A DNA stretch of 64,000 nucleotides, taken from sequence record PP886230.1. The stretch is one strand, 5' to 3'. Each line of letters opens with the position of its first letter. The stretch's first letter is position 1. This document shows, piece after piece, positions 38,213-38,294 of this stretch. The position numbers were made by a program, and so were the translations under genes. The notes beneath the pieces are model-generated. The model searched no databases. It had not been told where the DNA came from and saw only the letters and a program-made list of their open reading frames with translations.

Positions 38213-38294
38213 CCGGGCGTATCTCAACGGTCTTCTAAATCGTCGTTAATCGAGTAACTGGAGTATGCAGGTTCGAGTCCTGTCGCCTGGGCCA
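38213..38294 (+). tRNA. D-arm-less tRNA-Arg(TCT)-like RNA
   Basis: Acceptor CCGGGCG/CGCCTGG + GCCA, anticodon arm ACGGT-CTTCTAA-ATCGT only 7 nt after acceptor, extra hairpin, canonical T arm GCAGG-TTCGAGT-CCTGT. Confidence 0.7.

Follow-up and report, generated by a model that had tools for sequence, protein, structure and literature searches.

A rewired gene for a probable phage tRNA-Arg(UCU) with its D-stem equivalent placed around the anticodon arm, and a probable internal permutation of the tRNA order

A 64,000-nucleotide (nt) stretch of DNA from sequence record PP886230.1 (hereafter, the window) carries at positions 38213-38294 a tRNA-like gene with an unusual core. Its D-stem equivalent exists but is relocated: a CUC:GAG helix encloses the anticodon arm, and a D-loop-like AAYUGGA segment follows this helix instead of lying inside it. 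We consider it probable, from comparative sequence analysis, that this element is a functional, internally permuted tRNA-Arg(UCU) belonging to a phage-specific family and reading AGA codons. The window corresponds to Asteriusvirus (121Q/PBECO4-like) E. coli jumbo phage DNA, 901 tested bases being 100% identical to vB_EcoM_E9.1 and 99% identical to PBECO4 and SP27. In the following, element positions are counted from 1 = 38213, and the canonical tRNA numbering (A20, C35, U36, G73) is kept separate.

The element contains standard tRNA features: a 7-base-pair (bp) acceptor stem, an abutting T arm with a 7-nt UUCRANY-type loop and an anticodon loop with U33 and purine 37. The segments on which an original prediction had been built, namely the acceptor stem, the encoded CCA, the T arm, the Arg-type anticodon arm, TATCTCA, GTTA..TAAC and AACTGGA, are all present in the sequence, and the distance of 4 nt to the preceding tRNA-Ser(UGA) is as it had stated (Table 1). 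Only 7 nt, UAUCUCA (38220-38226), separate the acceptor stem from the anticodon hairpin, and the gene does not form the D hairpin that stands between acceptor and anticodon arms in a four-way junction. ARAGORN, with which a comparison had been proposed, called six ordinary tRNAs in the window and left the element uncalled. The Rfam tRNA model (RF00005) matched 38213-38291 with 29.3 bits for a cut-off of 29 (E 0.005), so that the threshold was barely reached; its alignment skips 15 D-arm positions and places about 20 nt as a long variable region. A family-specific covariance model, R1, gave 94.4 bits for the element as compared to at most 33 bits for ordinary tRNAs.

The secondary structure was derived by covariation from an alignment of 65 distinct sequences of the window subtype, obtained by pattern scans of IMG/VR. 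In this alignment, 97.9% of the cells (sequence counts, not independent events) at proposed pairs were paired, as compared to 72% in shuffles and 35-44% with slid partners, and double changes occurred in 18 of the 24 pairs. The acceptor, anticodon and T stems all covary. The CUC:GAG helix, formed by positions 11-13 with 40-42, is 100% paired with zero unpaired cells: pair 11:42 is an invariant C-G, pair 12:41 occurs as U-A (40 sequences), G-C (15) or A-U (10), and pair 13:40 as C-G (54), G-C (7) or U-A (4). U10 and U43, on the two sides of this helix, are each invariant. The top mutual-information scores fell exactly on the pairs of the acceptor, anticodon, T and CUC:GAG stems. Positions 14 and 39 also covary (mutual information 0.75), mostly as A/C or C/A and otherwise as Watson-Crick combinations. 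Covariation in the proximal helix was repeated in 102 further distinct sequences of the wider family. When run blind, RNAalifold recovered the acceptor, anticodon and T stems independently.

A second, BLAST-derived alignment of 12 sequences (A2) showed compensatory changes in the acceptor stem and in the first hairpin, the unpaired segments being near-invariant. Positions 44-54 do not vary across 8 phage groups except at position 46. Compensatory changes are visible even within the genus, with C6-G73 replaced by U6-A73 in Turkey5 and G18-U28 by G18-C28 in 121Q (element numbering). The bulge following the anticodon stem, 8 nt long here, measures 3-5 nt in other subtypes; its second nucleotide is G in 100 of 125 among the matches listed, and the linker ends with AU before the T stem in 124 of these 125, although these positions had been left free.

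Overall, the data make it almost certain that the RNA has four helices: the acceptor stem, the T arm, the anticodon stem and the CUC:GAG helix around the anticodon arm. The topology is a three-way junction made of the acceptor stem, the T arm and a long branch, which itself consists of the proximal helix, a 1-versus-8-nt internal loop and the anticodon stem-loop. A conserved 11-nt single strand connects the long branch to the T arm. The pairing of GAG back to CTC, which the original prediction had mentioned as a possibility, is therefore real, and the helix acts as a relocated D stem; conservation and covariation in relatives, which it had proposed to look for, are strong for the four helices. 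Its extra hairpin after the anticodon found no comparative support. In this GUUA/UAAC candidate (33-36 with 43-46), three pairs never vary, in part because the patterns fixed them, and the free pair 33:46 is unpaired in 11 of the 65 sequences and gapped in 7. Together with the proven CUC:GAG helix, this hairpin would moreover form a knot. Another candidate, with GAG 49-51 as the partner of CUC, was rejected as well, with 32 unpaired cells and no double changes. The description of the gene as lacking a D arm holds in that no D hairpin precedes the anticodon arm, but is imprecise given the D-stem-like helix and the D-loop-like segment; the D-armless structural model has to be replaced by the three-way junction.

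The 11-nt strand AAYUGGAGUAU opens with AAYUGGA, a motif common to the D loop, AAUUGGAUA, of the canonical tRNA-Arg of sister phages. In canonical numbering, AAYUGGA can be read as A14, R15, Y16, U17, G18, G19 and A20. The final AU of the strand resembles A21 and U48, the G at the second place of the bulge resembles G45, and the 14:39 covariation is reminiscent of the 26:44 pair. Read in this manner, the gene would run from the acceptor strand through U8 A9, 22-25, 26, the anticodon arm, a variable-loop remnant, 10-13, the D loop, 48 and the T arm to the second acceptor strand. Such an order may be described as an internal circular permutation of tRNA-Arg in which two adjacent inner blocks are swapped, the block containing 10-13 and the D loop having moved from before to after the block containing 22-25, 26, the anticodon arm and the variable loop.

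In the proposed fold, UCUC after U8-A9 would open no D hairpin but continue, with one nucleotide in between, directly into the anticodon stem. The anticodon arm would be followed by the 8-nt bulge, by GAGU pairing back to UCUC, and then by AACUGGA, GUAU and the T arm. The GG of AACUGGA would be available for the contact with the T loop and the following A would take the place of A20. Because the descending strand (4 + 1 + 5 nt) is continuous like 22-31 of a normal tRNA, and because the ascending strand of the D stem still leads to the D loop, stack length and elbow contacts could be kept. A stack of 4 + 1 + 5 layers, together with the elbow contacts, could thus be preserved despite the altered chain connectivity. 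In subtypes with 4-5-nt bulges, un-permuting the sequence would give perfectly ordinary cloverleaves. As to its origin, the permuted order would result if the inner block had been duplicated in tandem and the outer copies had then been lost. Un-permutation at the RNA level, as in red algae, is implausible, the termini being normal and two cuts plus two ligations being needed.

A BLAST search with a 96-nt region, run against 50,697 phage records to examine how the element is distributed, gave 243 records from at least 8 phage groups that contain 80% or more of the element. Carriers are about 24 Asteriusvirus genomes (96-100% identity), Felix O1 and many Felixounavirus phages (87-89%), Klebsiella Sugarland-like phages, Vequintavirinae (rV5-like), Mydovirus, Stephanstirmvirinae (phi92-like) and Salmonella jumbo phage 7t3; a copy in Streptomyces phage Stanimal is 83% identical. 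Other subtypes occur in isolates of Vibrio, Streptomyces and Rhizobium phages. Family members score 37-101 bits with the family covariance model, as compared to at most 33 bits for ordinary tRNAs, and 46 of 70 encode CCA. The copies consistently form part of tRNA arrays; at 86 IMG/VR loci, all neighbouring tRNAs (768/768) lie on the strand of the element, and ARAGORN called 4 of the 86 copies. Depositors label the copies variously as tRNA-Leu(taa), tRNA-TERM, tRNA-OTHER or plain 'tRNA', leave them unlabelled or include them in a coding sequence (CDS). Among cellular genomes, with 185,579 prokaryote species represented by a single genome each, the strict motif had five matches, all on contigs of metagenome-assembled genomes (MAGs). 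ARAGORN found several clustered tRNAs on three of these five contigs, which points to phage DNA that was binned wrongly. We therefore conclude that the element does not represent a tRNA type of cells.

Several annotations around family members deserve mention. In several Felix O1-like records (JF461087.1, NC_005282.1, MN882542.1, MT887289.1 and others), the rewired tRNA lies under a CDS annotated as 'HNH endonuclease' or hypothetical, and in VpaE1_ev78 and Riker an endonuclease gene lies immediately downstream of it, which hints at spread via homing-endonuclease-linked cassettes. In LR597663.1, all tRNAs are annotated opposite to the strand given by ARAGORN and Rfam, probably reflecting an error in the deposited strand. 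Two records named Campylobacter phage, MG065664.1 (A132) and MG065689.1 (A110a), match at the same identity as E. coli phi92-like and Felix O1-like phages; the genome size of A110a is similar too, and the Campylobacter host label of these records may be wrong.

This distribution bears on a pseudogene interpretation, according to which a one-off D-arm deletion with a junk insert produced a decayed tRNA-Arg. ARAGORN's miss, the Rfam score at threshold and the normal tRNA-Arg of sister phages would fit such decay. Conservation in unrelated phages and compensatory changes in every helix contradict it, and the differences between the rewired and the canonical allele extend over the whole gene and do not amount to a deletion; broken stems, loss of covariation and restriction to one lineage, by which a pseudogene would be recognized, are not what we observe. 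We give this interpretation practically no credence, in line with the original prediction, which had already taken the intact ends as a sign against a decayed copy. Relatives with a normal D arm, which it had regarded as a sign of a one-off deletion, do exist in 10 sister phages, but they carry a different allele and not an intact form of the rewired gene.

The anticodons of the family are almost exclusively those of arginine. When the pattern did not constrain the anticodon loop, the strict subtype yielded only UCU (most matches), CCU and UCG, with an identical loop in 82 of 98 matches. A looser scan, in which only GUA, the loop frame, TAAYTGGA and GTTCGA were fixed, retrieved at least 125 distinct sequences with bulges of 3, 4, 5 or 8 nt. 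Among the matches listed, the anticodons were UCU (86), ACG (23), UCG (9), CCU (3), GCG (3) and GAU (1), hence Arg in 124 of 125. Another 111 matches to the family model gave UCU 50, ACG 37, UCG 11, CCU 6, GCG 3, Ile 3 and one long insertion, that is Arg in 107 of 111. Since the D-loop motif might bias retrieval towards Arg, we also ran a motif-neutral topology scan on 1.94 Mb of fetched phage DNA, recording the offset of the anticodon hairpin in frames whose acceptor stem and T arm were both perfect. The offsets were bimodal, with about 850 frames at the 18-21 nt of ordinary tRNAs and 149 at 7 nt. In 147 of the 149 frames with the 7-nt offset, the anticodon was that of Arg.

Three model matches (L120:10605-10681, L125:2428-2504 and L186:7666-7742) have Ile anticodons, GAU twice and UAU once; they could represent an identity switch or non-functional copies. 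In L135:3635-3709 (37.6 bits), 28 nt stand in place of the 7-nt anticodon loop, either as an intron-like insertion or because the copy is broken.

Recognition by bacterial arginyl-tRNA synthetase (ArgRS) depends on A20, C35, U/G36 and A/G73, A20 in the D loop being the main determinant for the E. coli enzyme (PMC9976931). The element has the C35, U36 and G73 of bacterial tRNA-Arg. The A right after GG in AAYUGGA (position 50) is invariant and, from its place in the sequence, is a putative equivalent of A20. The discriminator is G in the window; across the 65 sequences, 34 have G and 28 have A (G/A in 62/65). In all ACG members among the 111 model matches (37/37), the loop CUACGAA is kept. This loop matches that of E. 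coli tRNA-Arg(ACG).

We then inspected the tRNA complements of near-identical and related phage records. VpaE1_ev78 (Felixounavirus), with 26 tRNAs, and Klebsiella phage Riker, with 25, have Arg only as ACG and are without a canonical tRNA-Arg(UCU). Neither Nernie (15 tRNAs) nor 121Q (6 tRNAs) has any canonical Arg tRNA. A canonical UCU tRNA was called alongside the rewired copy at 3 of the 86 IMG/VR loci; at one of them, L093, the anticodon of the rewired copy is CCU, and what was called as UCU overlaps a divergent member of the rewired family. Between two and four rewired copies are present at each of twelve loci, and the anticodons at a locus always differ from each other. Thus, L197 has rewired UCU, CCU, UCG and ACG members, and ARAGORN called no Arg tRNA at this locus. 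In Asteriusvirus, about 24 records have the rewired gene in the slot 4 nt after tRNA-Ser(UGA), whereas in 10 others this slot, between identical flanking sequences, is occupied by a canonical tRNA-Arg(UCU). As judged from these records, this is a natural allele swap. The T arm and the 3′ strand of the acceptor stem are about 92% identical to a T5-like canonical tRNA-Arg, which suggests descent from an ordinary phage tRNA-Arg. AGA accounts for 26% of the Arg codons, or 9.7 per 1000 codons, in the open reading frames (ORFs) of the window, whose GC content is 33%. AGA is a rare codon in E. coli.

The original prediction had left the choice between a functional non-canonical tRNA and a decoy. The Arg-only anticodons, the complementary distribution and the allelic replacement favor a functional tRNA-Arg, and the complementary isoacceptor sets in single phages make a decoy less likely. 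As a decoy or sponge outside translation, the RNA would absorb a nuclease directed against tRNA-Arg, ArgRS or another tRNA-binding protein. Its odd core might indeed impair use by the ribosome or EF-Tu while the anticodon loop and the acceptor end are kept as bait, and annotation tools mostly reject it as a tRNA. However, carriers are without the canonical tRNA that would be mimicked, the element replaces that tRNA in the same slot, and rewired isoacceptors are never duplicated in single phages. The constancy of the loop in ACG members also argues against a decoy, as does the fact that the translation machinery of unadapted E. coli can accept a D-arm-less tRNA (PMC11551756). We therefore regard a decoy as improbable. 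Even less probable is a role outside the ribosome, either of the charged RNA as an arginyl donor for a phage transferase or of the RNA in regulation or priming. A dedicated protein partner could account for the strict limitation to Arg and for the near invariance of the unpaired segments, but no conserved partner gene adjoins the element, the neighbours differ between phage groups, and only decoding makes sense of anticodons that match all Arg codon boxes.

A decoding tRNA-Arg therefore remains our preferred reading. The gene would be transcribed jointly with tRNA-Ser(UGA), and its RNA would be excised by host RNase P and 3′ enzymes. Host ArgRS would charge it via the A20-like A, C35, U36 and G73, and the rewired tRNA-Arg(UCU) would decode AGA. 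Acceptance of a synthetic D-arm-less tRNA by unadapted E. coli (PMC11551756) makes such a function plausible. Whether the family further represents a natural tRNA fold that is permuted from the cloverleaf with its L-shape contacts kept, is charged by an ordinary bacterial ArgRS and decodes on ordinary ribosomes, perhaps persisting by escaping host factors that recognize the tRNA-Arg core, appears to us evenly balanced.

The reason for the design may be sought in escape itself: a decoding tRNA-Arg would have been rewired to evade a factor of the host or of a rival phage that recognizes the normal D arm or core, such as a nuclease, a modifying toxin or tRNA quality control. This claim concerns why the design exists and is compatible with the decoding reading. 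Cases in which phage tRNAs rescue infection from tRNA-cleaving defences are known, with tRNA-Lys acting against PARIS (PMC11464382) and tRNA-Tyr against Septu (PMC13096335). The spread of the design across unrelated phage groups at about 89% identity, and its alternation with a canonical allele in one genus as expected under fluctuating selection, would agree with escape. However, the anticodon loop, the usual target of nucleases, is the same as in canonical tRNA-Arg, and our literature searches did not turn up a defence targeting the D region of tRNA-Arg. To our knowledge, no defence against the D region or core of tRNA-Arg is known. The same data are explained if the design arose once, was then subject to a structural ratchet and spread horizontally, which is the simpler account. 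We thus hold escape to be rather unlikely, though attractive.

Several points weigh against the interpretation of the element as a permuted, decoding tRNA. Concerning the structure, the alignment cells count sequences and not events, and most sequences were retrieved by patterns fixing many unpaired bases, so that invariance is partly built in; the D-loop motif in these patterns could also skew the collection towards Arg. The third pair of the proximal helix is unpaired in 43 of the 102 wider-family sequences, and the 3-bp proximal helix is absent from the RNAalifold prediction. In the minimum free energy fold of the single sequence, the T arm is broken, and the energy does not surpass that of shuffles (z -0.38). 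Concerning function, a few members have Ile anticodons, and at the loci L047 and L077 a canonical UCU tRNA is present beside the rewired one. There are RNA-library contigs that overlap the element, one of them matching 38047-38260 without a difference, but as assembled sequences they are uninformative on transcription, ends or charging. The three-dimensional mapping is reasoned from canonical tRNA contacts, and processing, charging, decoding and three-dimensional mimicry are all deductions.

Comparison with known systems helps to place the family. The canonical phage tRNA-Arg(UCU), of T5 or of the Sharanji/UE-S1 allele, shares with the element the loop CUUCUAA, the 7-bp acceptor stem, G73 and CCA, and the Sharanji/UE-S1 allele also shares the D-loop motif AAUUGGA (in AAUUGGAUA) and the slot after tRNA-Ser(UGA). 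In contrast, it has the 5′ strand of the D stem and the D loop before the anticodon arm, whereas the rewired gene has them after this arm and the variable-loop remnant. Like mammalian mitochondrial tRNA-Ser(AGY), the element is a natural non-cloverleaf in which the acceptor and anticodon stems are not separated by a D hairpin and the helix on the anticodon side is extended. This likeness to mitochondrial D-armless tRNAs, to which the original prediction had pointed, is only superficial. In mitochondrial D-armless tRNAs, neither the D stem nor the GG elbow contact is left, and these tRNAs rely on co-evolved mitochondrial factors (PMC11551756, PMC7609411). In the phage tRNA, a D-stem-like helix and a D-loop-like GG-A segment are retained, and the enzymes with which it must work are ordinary bacterial ones; a short unpaired connector with loss of the D stem and of the elbow nucleotides of the D loop, as in the mitochondrial type, is not found in it.

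The synthetic 'mini HisT', used by evolved E. coli, is likewise a non-cloverleaf tRNA in bacterial cytosolic translation, and indicates that, in principle, such folds can be accommodated by enzymes of the ArgRS type, by EF-Tu and by the ribosome. However, it is man-made by deletion of bases 11-25 and persists only with a pnp mutation (PMC11551756), whereas the phage family is natural, permuted and widespread. Allo-tRNAs and tRNA-Sec with 8/4, 9/3 or 8/5 acceptor/T branches are also natural non-standard architectures, mined from genomes and metagenomes and partly from phages (PMC5389517, PMC7609411). They keep the four-arm cloverleaf and alter only helix lengths, whereas the phage family alters topology. 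Circular permutation of tRNA segments has its own precedent: in the permuted tRNA genes of Cyanidioschyzon merolae, the 3′ half precedes the 5′ half and RNA processing restores a normal tRNA. There, the whole gene is permuted and the mature termini are internal. In the phage gene, only the inner block is permuted, the acceptor strands stand at the gene ends and no un-permuting route is apparent.

The element belongs to a loose tRNA region of the window, and the features of its locus are given in Table 1. The promoter-like site just upstream of tRNA-Ser is the probable start of a Ser-Arg transcript. A scan revealed no terminator-like site on the plus strand between the tRNA pair and the two 54-aa ORFs that follow. 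These ORFs, 38319-38483 and 38480-38644, both start with MTHEEWM. At the same place, 121Q and Sharanji have three ORFs of 165 bp, and BF17-like phages have four CDSs under the 901-base match. Elsewhere in the window, tRNA-Met (40174-40252) is longer than usual, with 79 nt and an enlarged D loop, and has an ordinary topology (Rfam 52.5 bits). The second tRNA-Ser has anticodon GCU in the window (39930-40019), whereas ARAGORN gives ACU in 121Q (L103:2965-3056) and Sharanji (L104:1971-2062); a serine tRNA with A34 is unusual in bacteria and phages.

Table 1. Features of the rewired tRNA-Arg(UCU) locus in the window (A3, alignment used for the element; element positions counted from 38213)
Feature	Coordinates	Strand	Basis
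Promoter-like site: GGGACA, 16 nt, TG-extended TATAAT	38081..38108	+	Consensus scan, 10/12 matches with TG; consensus match only
Canonical tRNA-Ser(UGA) with encoded CCA, upstream partner	38119..38208	+	ARAGORN; Rfam tRNA 60.1 bits
Spacer AAAU, 4 nt, between tRNA-Ser(UGA) and rewired tRNA-Arg	38209..38212	+	Sequence
Complete rewired tRNA-Arg(UCU) gene, 79 nt through the discriminator plus encoded CCA	38213..38294	+	R1 94.4 bits; Rfam 29.3 bits; alignment A3
Acceptor stem, 5′ strand (1-7), partner 38284-38290	38213..38219	+	7 pairs (one G-U), all covary; 99.1% of cells paired, 65 sequences
U8 A9, as in canonical tRNAs	38220..38221	+	Invariant in alignments A2 and A3
UCUC (10-13), 5′ strand of proximal D-stem-like helix, partner 38252-38255	38222..38225	+	Covariation
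A14, lone nucleotide between proximal helix and anticodon stem; putative equivalent of position 26	38226	+	Covaries with position 39
Anticodon arm: 5-bp stem (15-19 with 27-31), loop CUUCUAA; hairpin ACGGU-CUUCUAA-AUCGU	38227..38243	+	5/5 pairs covary; RNAalifold
Anticodon UCU	38234-38236	+	Sequence
8-nt bulge CGUUAAUC (32-39), 3′ side; proposed variable-loop remnant	38244..38251	+	C32 and UUAA conserved in A2
GAGU (40-43), 3′ strand of proximal helix	38252..38255	+	Covariation with 38222-38225
AACUGGAGUAU (44-54): D-loop-like segment (GG and A20-like A), then linker ending with AU before T stem	38256..38266	+	Conservation; D-loop role putative
T arm: stem (55-59 with 67-71), loop UUCGAGU	38267..38283	+	4/5 pairs covary; RNAalifold
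Acceptor 3′ strand 38284-38290 (72-78), discriminator G 38291 (G79), encoded CCA 38292-38294	38284..38294	+	Covariation, sequence
Two tandem paralogous 54-aa ORFs directly downstream (context)	38319..38644	+	ORF list

According to reviews and a study of 2024, the known bacterial tRNAs are all cloverleaves, with arm-less tRNAs confined to mitochondria (PMC11551756, PMC7609411). We found no description of such a rewired tRNA in the full-text literature searched, a search outside which most subscription journals lay. The family would constitute a new structural variant of tRNA and may provide the first example of a natural tRNA that works in bacterial cells without being a cloverleaf. If this is true, the all-cloverleaf rule would have a natural exception in cells of E. 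coli, Salmonella, Klebsiella, Vibrio and Streptomyces, and a ready-made new scaffold for tRNA engineering would be at hand. Classic laboratory phages (Felix O1, phi92 and 121Q) carry the family, which makes it directly testable. Because gene finders miss or mislabel its members, phage tRNA inventories and codon-usage studies would systematically under-count tRNA-Arg. Finally, the family bears on how much of the tRNA core is needed by the synthetase, EF-Tu and the ribosome, on how new RNA topologies originate, here by a permutation that duplication and loss could have produced, and on whether host defences shape the tRNAs of phages.

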